A stretch of DNA of 64,000 nucleotides from NCBI GenBank assembly GCA_965202585.1, contig OZ241827.1:68448001-68512000 (forward strand), given 5' to 3'. Below, piece after piece: positions 54,065-63,181 of the stretch. The first letter of the stretch is position 1; the number at the start of each line of letters is the position of its first letter. This DNA is from Thalia democratica (Eukaryota). The notes below the pieces were generated by a model, which was given only the letters and a program-made list of their open reading frames with translations, had not been told where the DNA came from and searched no databases. The position numbers and the translations under genes are program-made.

Positions 54065-56763
54065 TGAGCTTTTAATTTGTGAATCATTTATATTTTTTTT
54101 AAAGTTTTTGAAAGCTCTTAATAAGTTCTATCATGTCTTTTTATTTCTGTAGTGCAGTAACTTTGAGTTAATTTTGAGTTTAGAATAAACTTTTTGCTAA
54201 AAAACTATCACAAACTAAAAAACAACTACTTTAAAATCAAACAAAAGTATGTAACTTCAGTCTAACACAATTGTAAATTATTATCTACAAAATTAATTCA
54301 ACTGTCATTTTAAAGCAGTAATTTTTTTAAAGCTGGTACATACAACAGAACGCAACGTATTATAATTCTTAAATATCAAAAATAAACGTTAATATCTTAA
54401 ATGTTGTAAGTAACAACTTGTTTTTGGTTTTATATAAAACTTTTAAAAAGTTCAATAAGTATATATAATTTATAAAAAGTATATAAAAAGTAAACAAAAA
54501 AATGTACTTATAAGTTAAATAACTAAAGTGTCTTTATTGCGAAAATTAAACTTGGCGGAAAGTAATCGTATTGATTTTAGTGGGTAATATTCAATCTTTA
54601 AATATATATCTATGTATTTATTTATACCTAATATATTATTTCCTCGACAAGACTTTAAAAGGTATCTAAGAGTGTACGACTCGATAACCAAAAGGTTTTT
54701 CGTGCACCAGGTCCTAGAACCAAACACTTTGAGCGTTTTTTTATCGTTCAATAAACTAAATTTAAATGTGCCAAAAGTTTACTTAATCAGTTCAATAAAT
54801 ATCGTTTACCTATGTACTTTAGCTTGAGTTTACGCACAGCACGAAAAAAAAAAGCAATTCGCGTTCCGAACTGTACAGCAAAATTTCTTCTTTCAATTTA
54901 AATTTAATTAGAAAATAGAAATTTAAGTTTAGTGTGTTTTAATGTAAACTTACGACTTAATTTTTAGAAAAAGCATGTTTTAATAAGTGTTTAGTTTAAA
55001 CTGTTTTTTTAAAAGCTCAGCAAAACACAAAGCAGGTAATTTTATTTGATTAAAATTTATTAACTTTTTATTGTACAATTACTTCAAACTTATTAAACGC
55101 AAACATAATTATAAATAGTTAAACTGTTAGCTGACATTAATCACCTTTTTATGAACTCGTTTTTTTTCACGCTCATGAAAGGGTGACTCTTGTTAGTAAC
55201 TTGACACTTGAACAACGCCTTAGGCTCGCTTATATTTTTTCATAATTAATGTGAGAACAAAATGAGAGATTGACACTTTTTTAATGCAAAGTTCAAAAAA
55301 GTATTTTTTCAAGAGAACTATTTTTTTTTGAAAAAACTACACTTTCAGTTTAGTTCTTGTAATGAGTTCAAACGAGTAACAGCGCTTTTTAAAATATCAT
55401 TAATTTTTTTTAGGTGAGTTTTACTTAAAATAATCCATGTCATTTAAACGGGTATGAAACTTGATTCGTTCATGTATTAACTGTCCAGTTTTATTTGGAT
55501 TTTTTGAAATTATGTTATTAAACTTAAATTAGCAAAAAGTTTTAGCTATTTGTATATTTTTAATTTTTATTTTGTAAGCAAGGCTAGTTTTGTTATGTAA
55601 CGAATGAAATTTTGTCAGAAAAATTTTTGAATTATCCTCCACTTGTAATTAGTAGTGTTTTGTTATAAGTTTTATTACATTTTATAACTCTTAAATTATG
55701 AATTTACAATTTTAAGTTTATACCCTTAAATGTTTATAATTAATGTGCTTAAAAACACAAAAACAGTTTCAAAAAGTTATTAATAAATAAAATAGGCTTT
55801 TTACTTATAAAAATTATTTTCACATTTTTTTATTTTTCTAGCAATAGGAAAGGTTATTTTTAGGAAGCTAGCTAGTTTTAACTAAAAATGTTTATTTTCT
55901 GTACAATTTCGCCTTGTTTTACTACTAGAATAACTTTCAAACTTTAAGGTAAATTTCACTATCTTATTTTAAATCAAAACTTTAAAGCTAAGAAAATGAG
56001 AACAACTTTGTTTTATTTATATAGTAACTTGACAAACAGAATTATTAGATTAATTTATTTGGTTTTACATTCTAATAAAAAATGTATATGAAATAATTAA
56101 CTAGTTTTCCATTTTAACAGTTTTTAAGTAGTAAAAAATATTTCAGTGAAGCTAATTAAAAAATAGAAATGACTTGGGCTAAAAGAATTATTAAATTAAT
56201 GTTAAATAAAATATACGAAAATGCTTTTTACCGATATAACTATGCATCTATAGAAAATAAATTTACATAGTACTGTTTTCAATTCTGCTAGAGTTAAGTT
56301 ATTCAATTTCTTTTACAAATAACTAAGTGTAGTTACAGTTTTGCGACTTAAGTTGAAACTGTATTTATCAGCGAAAGTCTGTATTATAGAAGCTTGGACT
56401 TTTGTATGCCATGAGACAAGCTAAAGTTTAACAAAAGGGTTGATAGTACCAATTCGACCATCAGACCACAAACCCTCAGTAGACTGGTCAGTGTAGACTT
56501 CAGTCTAGTGAAAGTATTTTTGGCTTAATGATCGAATCGGTATGATCAACTCTTTAGTCGTAGGTAGTTGTTTTAACACTTGATTTGGTGGTTTAATTGT
56601 TTATTCGCAAATAGGTTATCCGAATTCGGTTTTATAAATGGGATGTATTTGTTGTTGGTTAGGTTAAACTCTATGTCTAGAAAGGTTTTTTGAACTAGGT
56701 CTGCGTCTGTTGTTATTTTGAAACCCAAATTATTACAAATCTATTGAAGCCCTTAGGGTGTAT

Positions 56764-57464
56764 CAGGGACGTGGCTTGGTACGTTTCTGCAAATCTACAG
56801 AAACGTATACTTATGTGCGAAAAAACTTGCTTTTGTTTCAGCTTGAAAATACTCGGCTTTCTTAGCTTTTAGTACTCATTTATGCTTAGTTATGCACTCC
56901 TGAGAGATAATTTTGACATATATGTACTCTTTAGCACTTTTAGTGTCGTAAAAAAATTAAACGAATTAAATACATCCAAATTGTAACATTTAGCGCGTTA
57001 AAGCTTTGTTTTGTCAAAAAGCTACAATGCAAAATTAAACCTATTGGAAGCTGTAGCTTCAAAAATCAAAATCAATGAATTTTATAATACAAAAATTTGC
57101 ATAACTTGTTGTTACTATTGACTACGTTAAATGTTTTATTTTATACGTTTAAATGTTTGAATGAAAACAATATTAATGTTTTGAGTTAAATTTTGATTTT
57201 TTTTAATGAATGTTTTCTGTATTTACACAAGTGGCATGGCATAAAAAGTCATATGGGGTGTGGAGCAAAATATATTGCCTTGTATACAGTTATCACTCGT
57301 ACTTCAACATTCAATTTTTGATGTATTAACATAACTGCATATTTTCAGATTAAATTCAATAATATTAGAGGTAGTTTAAATTGCTGTGTTCCCGCTAGGA
57401 CGTGTTATTTCAGATGTTTTAGTTTTTGCAGATTCGTAACTTTTTTGAGCTAGCTACGTCCCTG
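56764..57464. mobile_element. hAT-type MITE nested in the PLE remnant, 8-bp TSD
   Basis: TIR CAGGGACGTRGCT. TSD GGGTGTAT at 56756-56763 and 57465-57472. Removing it rejoins the RT frame. Confidence 0.85.
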
Positions 57465-57637
57465 GGGTGTATTTTCTGCGGTTCTTGCCGAATTCGGTTG
57501 TATGACCGCGAGGGCATCGTCTTTATAAATTTCAAACTCTTTGTTGTTAAATATATATTTTTTGTTTTTTCTTAGCATAAAGAGTCCTACCATATCGCAC
57601 ACTTCGGTTCCATTGCAGGATAACAAGCTAATATTAA

Positions 57638-58295
57638 GGCCATAGGGGGGTCCAACATTTTTTTTGCAAAAAATAACTTAGGCTTTTATATGAAAGTTAT
57701 AAGTATAAACTACAAGCCAGTGTTAATAGAATTCAAAAATATCATTTAACTTTTGAGATGTTTAATTTTTTGTAAAAATTTTCCAATATAAACCTATCGA
57801 CCGCAAATTTTTCGGGGTCAATTTTCTTGGAATTTTTAAATTCACTAAAAATCTATCTACTCCTTCATTTTTCAAGCAATCTTCTTCAAATTTTCAGGAA
57901 ACGTTCCTTATAATATAAGGAAAAAGCGTTACTTTAGAATTTTAATAATTTATAAAAATAAAAATTTTATCAAAAAAATTAAAAAAAAGTGTTTCTTTTT
58001 CAAACAAAATATATTTTTACAATTTTTTTTTTAATTCCAAAGTAACGTTTTTTTTATTGTATAAAGATTAGACTGTGAAAGTTTGAAGAAGATTGCTCAA
58101 AAAATGTAGGAGGAGATAGATTTTAAATGAAATAGTCTTTTTTCGCTGTTTTAGTTTTCCCTTCCTATAGGGAACCTATTATGCGGCCCGACTTTGACTG
58201 GTCATATCTCAAAAAATAATTTGAATTTTTTAAAAAAATAAAAAAAAAATTGAAACTAAGAAAAAACTCTATAAAATAAGATCAACTTGTAAAAA
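57638..58295 (+). mobile_element. Kolobok-like MITE (3' end lost) with an internal inverted repeat
   Basis: TTAA|GGCCATAGGGGGGTC start; shares both ends of its body with 39462-40117. Internal inverted-repeat arms at ~57850-57945 and ~58030-58125. Confidence 0.75.
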
Positions 58296-58905
58296 ACATA
58301 GTGGCCTTTGATTGTGATAAATGCGGATTTTTGTTCAATTTTTTTAGTTCTGCCTTGTATTTTGTATTTATTGATAAATTGGTAAGTTTTTTCATTTAAT
58401 TGTTCGATTATTCTCGGGTTTGATTATTTGTGTTCTTATGTGCTGTTTTCTTTTAAAAATTTGTTGTAAGTGTTTTTGTCTATTTCGTAAATGTTAATTA
58501 GTTTGTCAGAATAAATAAACTATTTGTCGGAGGATTTTAATTTTTTGATTTCTTTTTTCATAGTATTTAATGAACTGTTGTTGTATCTTTATAATTTATT
58601 GGTACTTATCAACTTGTACAAAGCGTTTTCAAAATCAGCTAACTTTGCGTCCGGTTGTGGTGTGTTTCTGGTAAAACATTTATTTGATGGTGTTTGTCTT
58701 CGTCTTGATAGTTCTTTTGTCGGGTTGCTGAATCTCAAAGAAACTTGCGCGCCATCTCAGTCTTTCTACGAAGTTATATACTTGTTTACAACATTTATAT
58801 GTATTCATTTTAATACATGTATGTTAAGTAGCGTTTTAACATCCATTAAAAAGTATTCTTTTTATTTTTTGTTTTTTACAGACCAAAAAAAGAATATACA
58901 CTTTA

Positions 58906-59980
58906 ATGATCTACAAAATTGAATCGAAATGGCGATCTGATTTAGCATTAGTAAGCAGAATGCCAGGATTGGTCAACAAAAACCTAAATTGCTACGCAAA
59001 CTCTGTAATGCAGACCCTTATGCACACACCTTCGGTGTTCAACCACTTTTTGAAGTACGACTGCACCTGCGAAAAAGGTTGTCACTACTGCAATATGAAG
59101 CAAACTTTTTTCAACTTAGACAAGTTGAGCAAAACTGGAATTAAGAAGCCAGTTACCATTGAGCCAGTTGCCTGTTTGAAAAAAGTCATGGATGGAAACA
59201 ATTTAGGTATGAAGATTAACGACAAAAATGACCCGATAGAGTTTCTTACTCTTTTGGAAGAACAAATGGGAAGAGTCGATGATAAAAGCTGTTCAGGAAA
59301 CTTTCTGGAAGATATTTTTGTGTGCAAGCAAGAAGAAATAAGTCAATGTAAGGCCTGCGGTAGTGAGAGTAGAATTAAAGGCTTTCCTTACCTTGGCTCA
59401 GGAAAAGGCGGTGTTGTAGACAACCTGAATAAATACTTTGATGTAAAAGATTGTAAAAAAAATTGTGATCAATGCAACAAACAAACGAGCTGGACTGAAC
59501 AAAATGTGATCACATCTTGCCCGCAAGTTTTGGTTGTGAAAGTGAGAAAACCGATAAAATTCCGAAAATTTATTGACATAAGCTCGTATCTACGAGATAA
59601 ACAAGACGAAACGGCGTTGTATGAGCTGTACAGCGTGATAGTTTACGTGGGCAACCGTAGGACAGACAATGGGCATTACTATGCTTACTGCAAGGCACCT
59701 GATGGTCGGTGGAATGTGTACAACGACACGTCGGTGAGAAAAACTGATTTGAAATTTGCTTTGAAAGCCGCTGCGTATTCTCTGTTTTATAGAAGAATTT
59801 CTGAATATGATGGCAGTCTTACTTGTGAAACAGAAAGTGAGCTAAGTACACAAAAAGTAAGTACCGATAATCAACAATCAAGTTGTGGAGCTGGGAGTAA
59901 AACAGATCAAACTAGTGGTGATACTAGCAAATACTTGAATGACAAAGAAAAAAGTGAACTGGCACTCAACAACCTAACAG
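58906..59980 (+). CDS. USP (peptidase C19) deubiquitinase catalytic domain, USP36/42/17-like, on a single large exon
   Basis: Cys box GLVNKNLNCYANSVMQ; CTC..GC.YC segment; NDPIEFL; finger CKAC/CDQC; His box YELYSVIVYVG..GHYYAY..W..YND. Acceptor TTTACAG at 58881. Confidence 0.9.
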
Positions 59981-60374
59981 GTTAGCATTAATCATTCTTT
60001 ACTGTCTTTTCTTTTGTATTTAAACTTAATACTTTTAACAAGCAGTAAGAGCATAGCAAAAATATTTTTAGGTACTTTCTTGAGCCCCCTTAAAAGTTAA
60101 AAAACTTATAAAATTAAAGTATTTACAAGTGATTTACCCGATCCACAAACCAGCTTTTCACGCTAAGTTGCGGATCCAGTTGGATTTTTTGTGAAAAAAA
60201 AGATCAAGATCCTTTGTCGAATTTCCTTCTGGGCGATTATAAAATTCTTAGCAGTCATAGAGTACTACATTATGGCTTGTTATTTTATCAAAGCTATTCA
60301 GTTTTATACCGTAAATTTAAATAAAATAAAAACAAGGCTTTTTTACTCATTTCAAATGAAAACGGTGTCTAAAA

Positions 60375-60559
60375 CAGGCTTTCCCAAAATGGGCTATATT
60401 GGTCTTCTTGAAGCAACTTTTGGTATCAAGGGTTATAATTAATAGTGTTGGTAACAATCGCAAAGGTAATTTTAATAATGTGGGTAATAACATTTAACTA
60501 AGGGTCTAATATTTATTTGATTTATTTGAAGGGGGCGGTTAGAGTTTCGGGAAACTCTT
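60375..60559. mobile_element. Degenerate hAT-type MITE
   Basis: CAGGCTTTCCCAAA ... TTCGGGAAACTCTTG termini resemble the 8178 and 42218 elements. Confidence 0.55.
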
Positions 60560-61092
60560 GTTTAGTTTTAACCCTCGATTTCGATAATAATAGTAAAATA
60601 CTAAACACATCCATAGGTTATCTAAATTTAAATATCAACAATGATATAAAAAGTTTTTGTTTGAAAATGATTATTTACTAAACAAATCAAGTGTTTTTAT
60701 GTCATATTTGTAAAATTGATATTAGTAAGTCTATTTTTGTTGTCTAGCATTTGTAGAAGTTTAAATCAAACACATAAAACTTTACTTTTATTAAATTCTT
60801 CTAAAATAGTATGAACGAAACTAATATATATAATAGTATAATACAAAAACAGTTATAAACTCTCGTGTTTTTTTTTTGTTTAAAGCCAGAGTAGTTATAA
60901 TTTACAATTTATACTGTATCTTTAAAATGAACAAAAGTTTATTAGTTTGATGAACTAAATGTAATAAACTACAATCAACTATAAGATATCTTACTTATTA
61001 CATTAAATAACTTATTTACAGCCAACAAGTTGTAAAAGTTATGAGGTTTAAATTAAAAGTCAAGTAGTAATAAAGCAACAAAATAAACACAG

Positions 61093-61832
61093 GCTTGAAA
61101 GAAAATTTACCTAAACCGGAAGAAGCTACATTTAACGACTTATCTGTGAAAATAGAAGGTAGTACTGGAATTTAATTGATTTAATCTGTCTTTATAATAC
61201 ACTTATTTCCTTAGAATCTTTACGTTTTAGACAAGTTTAAAAAACCTTACCTATTTAAAAAGTGTTTACACACTTGGTGAACTCGTTAACTTAGTCTTAA
61301 CTTCGTATTAATTCATCAAAAAGTTATATTTTACAAAAGTATTCATTTACATTTTATTGATAATCCGTTATTTTTTAACACTTGATTGTATATTTTAAGT
61401 ATAAATTTCTTAATTACTTTTTTTTTTTGATTATCTGTAAAAGTTGCTAAGACAAATTTAAGTAAATACAATTAAACACTTTTGATACTATACTACGAAG
61501 GTAAAACAGTTGATTTTTATTTTCAACTCACTGTTTAATACAGTCTATTCAGCTCAAAAACTATTCAGACTTTAAGGTTACAAAATTAAACATAAAGTTA
61601 AAAAAAGTTGAACTAATTTTCTAAAAACAAAAAAAACAATTTTTGTTTACGCCAAATGTCTTACTTTCATATCACATTAATAACTTAAAAACAGTTTCAA
61701 AACAAATAAAAGTTATAAAATTTCAAATCTCCTAGTTAAGTAGTAAAAATTACATATCGAAAACAGGTTTAGAAGGAAGTTTACGTAATTCAGGAAAAGC
61801 TGAAGTTGATGATCTGTCTAGCAGTAAGAAAG
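61093..61832 (+). CDS. Two paralogous 66-nt phase 1-1 linker exons (61093-61158, 61767-61832)
   Basis: ACAG|G acceptors and G|GT donors. Translations GLKENLPKPEEATFNDLSVKIE and GLEGSLRNSGKAEVDDLSSSKK align without gaps. Confidence 0.6.
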
Positions 61833-62256
61833 GTTTTTTTTTTCATTTTGAGTTATATCATATTTTTCTTATAACTTTAAGTTTATATATTTTACATAAA
61901 AGGTTTTTGACTTAAGTAATAAAATTAAAAGTCTTTATTAAAAACCTAGTTTTCACACTTGTTGTAGTTCCTAAACTAACCCTAAATTTCCTATTAGTTT
62001 AGTTATGCTTATATATTTGATGCTTGACTAAGAAATTAATGTTTCTGATTAATAGAATTTCAATTTTTATCTAAATTTATTTGTAAATTTAAAAGTTATT
62101 TCAAATTTAATCTATAAAAGTTATTGAAACGAAACTAGTTTGCATAATTTTAAGTTTTATATTTGAGAAAACTTAACGCTGTAAACAAACAGTTGAACTT
62201 GTTTTAATACGTCTTATCAAGCCCTTAATCATAGTAAGCTTATAATTTTGTTTTAG

Positions 62257-62600
62257 ATTGTAAAGATACAAACAAAGCCAAAGAAAAGAACAGACTTGCT
62301 CCAGATGCGAAAACGGGCGATGAAAGGCCTCAATGCGACGTTTGCCTCAAAACATTTGCAACCAGACAAATTCTCAGAAAACACGAGAAGATTCATACTG
62401 ATAGAAAAAGGCCGTTTGCATGCCCATTTCCAAATTGCACGTCCACATTTTACAGGAGAGTCCACTTGACAGCTCACCAAAGGGTTCATAGCAAAAACAG
62501 AGATTTCGCATGTCCTCATTGTCAAAAAGCTTACAAACACGTACAATCGTTGCAAATCCATGTGAAACGCAATCATCCGAAAAATAAAAACGATGAATAA
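62257..62600 (+). CDS. Terminal exon encoding three tandem C2H2 zinc fingers
   Basis: TTTTGTTTTAG acceptor (phase 1): CDVC..F......HEKIH-TDRKRPF-CPFPNC..F......HQRVH-SKNRDF-CPHC..Y......HVKRNH, then TAA. Confidence 0.9.
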
Positions 62601-63181
62601 GGAATAAAACAGTTTGTCATCAAGTGTTTTAACTATCAAAAATAGTTGAAATTTTTTTACAGCGAAATTTGACAATTTTTAATAAATTGATTTTATTTAA
62701 TTAAGGCAAATTTAATGCTATGACTACAGAATATGATTTTATTATGTTTAAGAAATTACTCCTTATAATATCTGATTAACATAAAGTTTATTTATTTCAG
62801 TAAAAAATTAAGTTGCCTTTTTTTTTTAAACTAAAGCTTTCTAATAAAGCTTAGCTGTTCTTAAAATAGAGTTAAAACAAATAAAACTCAAATTTTGTCA
62901 TTTTATTTACTTAAAGTAATTGTTTTTGCTAATAATTTATTTAAATACATAAATATATGTTAGTTGTAAAAATATTTAAGTTGTCTAGGTTTTACATAAT
63001 AAATGTTAAAGAAGAGTAATACAGTTTACAAAGTGATTGTTTTATATGTTTTTTTTTATGTTTGCACTTGTTGTATTAAAATTATAATAGTATACCAATA
63101 TAGTTAAAGTCAAAAATACTATATATATCTTTTTTTTTAATATATCATTTAATAAATAAAGAATTTGTTAGTAATAACTTT

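Follow-up and report, generated by a model that had tools for sequence, protein, structure and literature searches.

A single gene of four coding exons, encoding a 516-residue protein in which a USP domain is joined through a linker to three zinc fingers, is probably present in the window, that is, in the whole stretch of 64,000 nucleotides that was analysed. The gene would belong to a lineage-restricted family. The source genome is that of a marine animal and is AT-rich. The predicted protein would consist of a USP17/36/42-like deubiquitinase domain, a low-complexity linker, which appears to be assembled from shuffled modules of 22 amino acid residues, and three C-terminal Kruppel-type C2H2 fingers. 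The elements of the locus are as follows.

58690-58780, plus strand: upstream block containing GCGCGCC, 96-98% identical to the C1 paralog and one metagenome ortholog
58871-58881, plus strand: 3' splice acceptor TTTTTTACAG/, about 25 nt 5' of the ATG, present in all copies
58906-59980, plus strand: coding exon 1, complete USP (peptidase C19) catalytic domain and Ser/Thr/acidic tail
58990-58992, 59674-59676 and 59725-59727, plus strand: catalytic residues Cys29, His257 and Asp274, all present
59981-61092, plus strand: intron 1, unusually conserved (about 0.72 identity to the cluster paralogs)
61093-61158, plus strand: exon A, 66 nt, phase 1-1, AG/../GTAGTA, part of the linker (GLKENLPKPEEATFNDLSVKIE)
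61159-61766, plus strand: intron 2
61767-61832, plus strand: exon B, paralogous to exon A, 66 nt, phase 1-1
61833-62256, plus strand: intron 3, 3' end TTTTAG
62257-62600, plus strand: terminal coding exon, basic linker and three classical C2H2 fingers, TAA at 62598-62600
62334-62396, 62421-62489 and 62511-62576, plus strand: the three classical (Kruppel-type) C2H2 finger units
62603-62608, plus strand: poly(A) signal AATAAA, 3 nt beyond the stop

The members of the family fall into three types.

Type 1, window type: 2 loci and the metagenome orthologs
Type 2, segmentally duplicated cluster: C2, 81.4-84.9 Mb, with 1-2 extra linker exons of 252 nt
Type 3, older four-finger member: C2, 80.87 Mb

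The first-pass annotation had proposed two in-frame splice routes from the USP exon to the finger exon, and one of them is well supported. Rebuilt by script, the first route (58906-59980, 61093-61158, 61767-61832, 62257-62600) gives 1551 nt and 516 residues with a single terminal stop, as had been claimed, and the conserved sites, the phases and the open frames in paralogs and orthologs argue strongly for it. Coding exon 1 ends on codon position 1 (phase 1) at the donor CAG/GTTAGC, and the TAG of the USP open reading frame itself (59983-59985) is located inside intron 1. The finger exon lies directly 3' of TTTTAG/ and contains no Met, in agreement with the annotation, which had it begin at an acceptor without an in-frame ATG of its own. 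In the window copy the donors at 59981 (GTTAGC) and 61833 (GTTTTT) depart from the consensus. The second is the weak donor of exon B, a site that reads GTAAAT in C1, in a metagenome copy and in the cluster. As a symmetric cassette, exon B could be skipped with the frame preserved. The second proposed route (donor GTAAGT at 59857, acceptor AG at 61734-61735) is in frame in the window and was rejected: its donor GT occurs in the window copy only, the position being AC or TT in C1, metagenome and cluster copies, and its 33-nt extension carries TAA in both metagenome contigs. A transposon cargo was also considered and rejected; the homology to C1 and the metagenome runs into the flanks (54721-56203, 56388-56762) with no sharp ends.

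The identity of the upstream block to the C1 paralog and the metagenome ortholog is above that of the coding sequence, and the block is missing from cluster-type paralogs. It is possibly a promoter, a 5' UTR or an outron. A GT donor near 58774 is lost in the metagenome copy, and a spliced 5' exon is therefore not claimed. We infer that the acceptor at 58871-58881 serves either a 5' UTR intron in cis or a spliced leader. The conservation of intron 1 rises to 0.78-0.85 identity to cluster paralogs in the segment 60920-61092; an Rfam search for a non-coding RNA inside this intron gave no match. Signals of the ATTAAA/AATAAA type are found at 60113 and 60320, 130-335 nt past the USP stop, and could give rise to a USP-only isoform.

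The USP open reading frame (58906-59985) is intact and has 359 residues. It matches Pfam UCH (PF00443) with an E-value of 1.1e-28 (score 100.9 bits, cut-off 23.9 bits) over profile positions 2-254 of 254. Across 80 related USPs, 28 columns have a conservation of 90% or more; it agrees with 27 of these, and at the remaining one, a Gly column, it has a gap. The intact Cys, His and Asp motifs noted earlier are recovered as C29, H257 and D274. These residues, together with N24 and Q36 for the oxyanion Asn/Gln, which are also present, fall on invariant columns of the 80 relatives. The zinc ribbon CxxC...CxxC is complete (C148/C151 and C187/C190). The domain is apparently active as a deubiquitinase. 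The best PDB match is human USP36 (3e-18), and among named database entries a rodent USP17-like tandem array comes first, which fits the earlier assignment as USP36/42/17-type; the placing in this subgroup is tentative and follows the top matches, at about 33% identity.

The finger exon matches Pfam zf-C2H2 with 1.4e-10. The fingers are arranged in tandem with the canonical F/Y-x-C...F...L..H...H pattern, and their zinc ligands are all retained in 11 copies. The H-C linkers between them are of the 7-residue, TGEKP-like Kruppel type with conserved length. The L070 paralog (SGKKPFK, SNEKPFK) and the cluster (TGKKRFK) have canonical linker sequences, and those of the window (TDRKRPF, SKNRDF) are degenerate. 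Tandem canonical fingers with Kruppel-type linkers are the signature of polydactyl nucleic-acid binders. The fingers would be expected to bind nucleic acid, most likely DNA, and the deubiquitinase would therefore be tethered to specific chromosomal sites. There the enzyme may strip ubiquitin from chromatin proteins (such as H2A/H2B) or from DNA-bound factors, a role close to the sequence-targeted deubiquitinase that the first-pass annotation had proposed.

One may go further, tentatively, and propose a natural family of DNA-sequence-addressed deubiquitinases whose paralogs act at different genomic addresses, although we consider this broader proposal rather doubtful. A USP17/36-like core would be tethered through the exon-shuffled linker to the Kruppel-type fingers, the family would have grown by segmental duplication with finger contact residues differing between types, and the paralogs might erase ubiquitin marks (e.g. 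H2A/H2Bub) or stabilise bound factors. The other way of reading the fingers, and an unlikely one in our estimate, is that the fusion is real and that their ligand is RNA, a protein partner or ubiquitin, the last in the way of the UBZ fingers of ZUP1/ZUFSP. They would then govern the choice of chain or substrate and not genomic position. Weak matches of the fingers to Pfam zf-C2H2_jaz (dsRNA-binding) and zf-Di19 are consistent with this. However, UBZ fingers are isolated, while the cluster, L070 and the window all have tandem canonical fingers with the 7-residue linkers described above.

The joining of the two domains is best judged from the family. At least 12 paralogous loci in the genome have a USP exon followed by a finger exon 2.3-4.5 kb downstream on the same strand, and two independent marine-metagenome contigs (ERZ907909 and ERZ27291330) have the same order and strand as the window locus. 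The layout in the window is far beyond chance, since its exon order, phases and splice sites are found again in these loci and contigs. The window group and the cluster agree in all six splice dinucleotides (12/12 bases), although their intron identity is only 0.60-0.73, and every intron is in phase 1. Exons A and B contain 0 indels, whereas the aligned introns, about 1960 bases, show about 57 gap events; substitutions in exon B are as fast as in introns (0.62 identity). In every copy the USP open reading frame stops 0-2 codons into the intron, just after CAG/GTAAGC or CAG/GTTAGC. Six cluster paralogs give complete frames of 594-680 residues via 5-6 phase-1 exons. The L070 paralog, only 36-38% identical, gives an in-frame protein of 592 residues with a USP and four fingers, also with phase-1 introns; the USP is followed by a separate phase 1-1 exon with one finger and then by three fingers.

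Both the USP and the finger domains are under purifying selection. The omega values are 0.24-0.5 for the finger exon (Fisher p 0.0008-0.05) and 0.38-0.7 for the USP in most pairs (Fisher p 2e-7 to 0.002), with 1.1 in one near-identical pair. The window copy and C1 have roughly 5% coding differences. Of the 4 copies with a broken USP exon, 2 also have a broken finger exon, against 0 of the 9 with an intact USP exon. The USP family as a whole is multi-copy in the genome (91 matches). One member, L013, has a USP and a K/E-rich tail without fingers, and no C2H2 motif was found within the 1.5-kb flanks of the other USP paralogs. The cluster copies are at least 100 kb apart in an inverted block arrangement, which indicates segmental duplication.

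From these features we infer that the four exons are joined in the mRNA. It is important to weigh against this the explanation of two neighbouring genes that are always co-duplicated. One would be a single-exon USP ending at TAG 59985, the other a small gene for the zinc fingers, made up of exon A, exon B and the finger exon and expressed from a separate start. The latter might, for instance, be the downstream cistron in an operon of the tunicate kind, resolved by spliced-leader trans-splicing. Operons and SL trans-splicing are known in tunicates, and the poly(A)-like signals past the USP stop would suit this arrangement. The three sequencing runs that match the locus are likewise compatible with it, as they are DNA contigs that cover exons and introns alike with no exon-exon joint. 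The exon-junction 27-30-mers are absent from the JGI metagenome contigs and, at up to 3 mismatches, from this genome, where no processed retrocopy was seen; the spliced 516-residue protein was not found in protein databases. In the cluster paralogs exons R and B contain an in-frame ATG in good context (AAAATGG), which could start a finger-only product. However, the finger exon is under purifying selection, yet in the window copy, in C1 and in the two metagenome copies no usable Met occurs in exon A, exon B or the finger exon; the only Met beyond the USP exon in the window group is found in one copy, 8 residues from the C-terminus. In the window group the fingers could therefore be translated only through the USP exon. 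In addition, the USP exon donor is conserved, down to 36% identity, in the phase (1) required by every acceptor downstream, and among 14 candidate ATG first exons in the introns the sole conserved one is 13 nt long with the poor donor GTCTTC. Two separate genes are accordingly improbable, and a single fused gene is preferred.

It is still less probable that the window copy is a decaying or non-functional duplicate with working members elsewhere, as the weakened exon B donor, about 2.5 kb of additional upstream DNA relative to the metagenome orthologs and several visibly broken family members could suggest, because the four coding exons are open, the catalytic and zinc-ligand residues are all intact, omega against C1 and the metagenome copy is 0.24-0.49 and exon B can be skipped in frame.

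Deubiquitinases normally get to chromatin via partner proteins or ubiquitin- or histone-binding modules. If the fused gene is real, a USP joined to a polydactyl C2H2 array would be an architecture unseen among the nearest database relatives and a natural instance of sequence-addressed ubiquitin erasure. Such an enzyme might serve as a template for programmable deubiquitinases. On the broader proposal of paralogs with different genomic addresses, the family would be the natural, cis-encoded equivalent of engineered targeted deubiquitinases and a mirror image of KRAB-ZNF-type expansions. The family also illustrates clean phase-1 exon shuffling and duplication within the linker, and a rapid rise in the copy number of USP17-like genes outside mammals.

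The combination appears unusual, as the first-pass annotation had suspected: zf-C2H2 occurs in none of the 89 nearest USP representatives scanned, and a literature search found no paper on a USP with C2H2 fingers. The family also appears lineage-specific within database reach, its only close relatives being marine metagenome contigs. USP36, USP42 and USP17 (DUB-3) share with the window protein a compact core of about 300 residues, the Cys box, the His box, the Asp and the four-Cys zinc ribbon; USP17 shares in addition a core on one intronless exon and a family that is multi-copy in the genome. However, the identity is only about 30-35%, and these enzymes are without C2H2 fingers, whereas in the window family splicing would add a modular linker and three or four Kruppel-type fingers to the core. 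USP36 and USP42 have nuclear and chromatin substrates. Other deubiquitinases are directed to DNA in trans or via other DNA or chromatin modules, BAP1 with YY1/FOXK and MYSM1 with SANT/SWIRM. They resemble the proposed enzyme in that a deubiquitinase is aimed at chromatin sites by a sequence- or chromatin-reading module, but there the reading function lies in another protein or in a domain other than a finger, while in the window family reader and enzyme are predicted to lie in one chain through exon joining. In ZUP1/ZUFSP, C2H2/UBZ fingers and a C78 deubiquitinase are found in one polypeptide (PMC5824887). The likeness lies in C2H2-type fingers on the same chain as a deubiquitinase; however, its protease fold is unrelated (C78, not USP), and its fingers are N-terminal, of the ubiquitin-binding UBZ class and without Kruppel linkers.

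The window consists of AT-rich eukaryotic DNA (G+C about 27%). The two domains considered here are encoded by the following features:

58906-59985, + strand: USP open reading frame, 359 amino acid residues
62257-62600, + strand: finger exon following TTTTAG, 113 residues, three classical C2H2 fingers, no methionine

The USP frame matches Pfam UCH across the whole profile (E 1.1e-28). Aligned with 80 related USPs, it agrees with 27 of the 28 columns conserved at 90% or more, the sole exception being a gap at a Gly column. The intact Cys/His/Asp motifs reported in the first-pass annotation correspond to Cys29, His257 and Asp274, and a four-Cys zinc ribbon is present as C148/C151 and C187/C190. 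The core is predicted to be catalytically complete. The nearest solved structure is that of USP36 (3e-18), and the best named match in an exhaustive phmmer search is a rodent USP17-like tandem array; all closer matches are unnamed marine-metagenome proteins. The finger exon begins, as that annotation had stated, at an acceptor and has no in-frame ATG; its reading frame closes at TAA 62598-62600.

The genome of Thalia democratica was searched with each domain, the USP and the fingers, separately. Every close USP paralog is accompanied by a matching finger exon in the same orientation, 2.3-4.5 kb downstream. A single copy on sequence C1 is 91-92% identical to the window copy, about 11 occupy a segmentally duplicated block (the cluster) at C2 81.4-84.9 Mb with identities of 63-65% (USP) and 55-60% (fingers), and one distant copy, L070, at C2 80.87 Mb shows 36-38% and 40-44%, respectively. 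The same layout is found on two independent marine-metagenome contigs, L061 and L072, the USP of L061 being 84% identical; with the C1 paralog and the window copy these form the window group. Six of the seven cluster loci with an intact USP exon give complete frames of 594-680 residues with all exons assembled, and the seventh has a single TGA, located within a skippable cassette exon. L070 has an independent 592-residue frame across two phase-1 introns, in the order USP core, acidic linker, donor, 162-nt one-finger exon and terminal three-finger exon; its donor AAAA/GTAAGT is consensus and lies 13 nt ahead of the ORF stop.

The cluster paralogs contain one or two extra 252-nt exons (L063-L069, L071), bounded by AG and GTTAGC and of phase 1-1, for example:

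L064 2693-2944 and 4351-4602: chimera of exon-B-like module and USP tail

These exons are seamless chimeras of a 66-nt module resembling exon B and a copy of the USP tail (residues ~297-358), with the junction where the donor of exon B lies. They record exon shuffling or illegitimate recombination with phase 1 preserved.

USP-core matches are numerous in the genome (at least 91 in total), many of them intronless, arranged in tandem clusters and sharing about 30% identity with the window USP, in what looks like a large USP17-like expansion:

G000 (this genome) C7 50.96-51.30 Mb, C14 0.01-0.13 Mb, C4 35.8 and 72.5 Mb, and C415: tandem USP clusters, USP-core matches

Another paralog, L013 (G000 C5:24769507-24771168), is a 553-residue single-ORF USP of 41% identity without fingers; its long tail is Lys/Glu-rich and repetitive (repeats such as KRKIxSGVLxES).

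Two splice routes between the domains had been proposed. Route 1 was described as an in-frame join of 1551 nt and about 516 residues, and the rebuilt join (58906-59980, exon A 61093-61158, exon B 61767-61832, and 62257-62600) gives exactly such a frame, with 516 codons, a single terminal stop and phase-1 introns throughout. All six of its splice dinucleotides are retained in every copy examined in the locus alignment; the chance of finding 12 of 12 splice-site bases unchanged is about 0.006 at 0.65 identity per base (our own arithmetic). The USP frame always runs into CAG/GTAAGC (cluster) or CAG/GTTAGC or AAG/GTTAGC (window group, including the window donor at 59981), with the stop 0-2 codons into the intron. 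Each of exons A and B measures exactly 66 nt in all copies. Comparison of window-type with cluster-type introns gives an identity of 0.60-0.73 and about 57 gap events in ~1960 aligned bases, while the 132 bases of exons A and B contain none against ~3.8 expected from the intron rate (Poisson p ~0.02, our own arithmetic). The exon B donor is GTTTTT in the window and GTAAAT in every other copy; therefore, exon B may often be skipped there, with the frame kept (494 residues). Downstream of the USP frame, a USP-only isoform could be produced through the ATTAAA and AATAAA signals at 60113 and 60320. Route 2, the second proposed route, was rejected as a conserved isoform: its GTAAGT donor at 59857 exists only in the window copy (AC or TT in other copies), and the 33-nt exon extension contains TAA in both metagenome orthologs.

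The ~2.5 kb at 56204-58670 have no counterpart in either metagenome ortholog, where the equivalents of 56203 and 58671 are adjacent, and are only partly shared by the C1 paralog (57465-57637); they probably represent an insertion, possibly a transposon, a short distance upstream of the gene's conserved 5' block. The segment 58690-58780, containing GCGCGCC, matches the C1 paralog and a metagenome ortholog at 96-98% identity, exceeding the conservation of the coding sequence, and is absent from cluster-type copies; it is a candidate core promoter or outron. In intron 1, directly 5' of exon A, 60920-61092 is non-coding with many stops, has no Rfam match, and is conserved between window and cluster types (0.78-0.85) to the same degree as exons. 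It may act as a splicing or regulatory element, or represent an unknown RNA.

Both domains are under purifying selection. Nei-Gojobori estimates of omega are 0.24-0.54 for the finger exon; for the USP exon they are 0.38-0.71 in all pairs except the near-identical L065-L068 (1.11). For finger and USP exon, Fisher tests of synonymous versus non-synonymous changes give p = 0.0008-0.05 and 2e-7 to 0.002, respectively. All C2H2 ligands are retained in 11 copies. The gene family is real and under selection. The decay of the two exons is linked, the finger exon being broken in two of four copies whose USP is broken and in none of nine whose USP is intact (Fisher p ~0.08, our own arithmetic).

One alternative is that of two neighbouring genes or an operon, with the finger exon expressed from its own start. 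It keeps some weight for cluster-type copies, whose R and B exons contain an in-frame AAAATGG at which translation of a finger-only product could begin. It does not hold for the window group, which has no usable start Met in exons A, B or the finger exon: neither the window copy nor the C1 and metagenome copies have a Met in exon A or B, the finger exon has none in the window and C1, and the only Met of the L061 finger exon is 8 residues from the C-terminus. A convincing ATG-bearing first exon was not found in the introns. The finger exon is kept by selection but is unable to start translation, and its reading must therefore begin in a coding exon further upstream; the USP exon is the only one in the conserved unit able to carry it. 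No exon-exon joint was found at the locus in three matching runs, which are short DNA contigs with exons and introns alike; no spliced product was found in protein collections, and junction oligomers were absent from JGI metagenome contigs and, as retrocopies, from elsewhere in the same genome. The one-gene case therefore rests on comparison. The USP and the fingers probably form one fusion, which the comparative anatomy supports well.

No zf-C2H2 domain occurs in the 89 nearest USP representatives (9 + 80) or is listed for the top 100 language-model neighbours, and no description of a USP plus C2H2 architecture was found in the literature. Judged against its nearest USP relatives, the family would represent a new domain architecture within a known enzyme class. 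The three fingers may be nucleic-acid binders, with DNA the most likely ligand, and this binding would tether the deubiquitinase to particular sites. By our own reading, 7 of 12 putative contact sites (positions -1, 2, 3, 6) differ between window and cluster types; this does not exceed the overall divergence, and would fit different targets without being evidence for them. The main mechanistic rival is that the fingers bind ubiquitin in a UBZ-like manner, as in ZUFSP (PMC5824887), and the tandem Kruppel organisation speaks against it. The fingers of ZUFSP are UBZ-like and bind ubiquitin, whereas those of the window family are three in tandem, of canonical pattern, with 7-residue Kruppel-type linkers (TGKKRFK in the cluster, SGKKPFK and SNEKPFK in L070, degenerate in the window).
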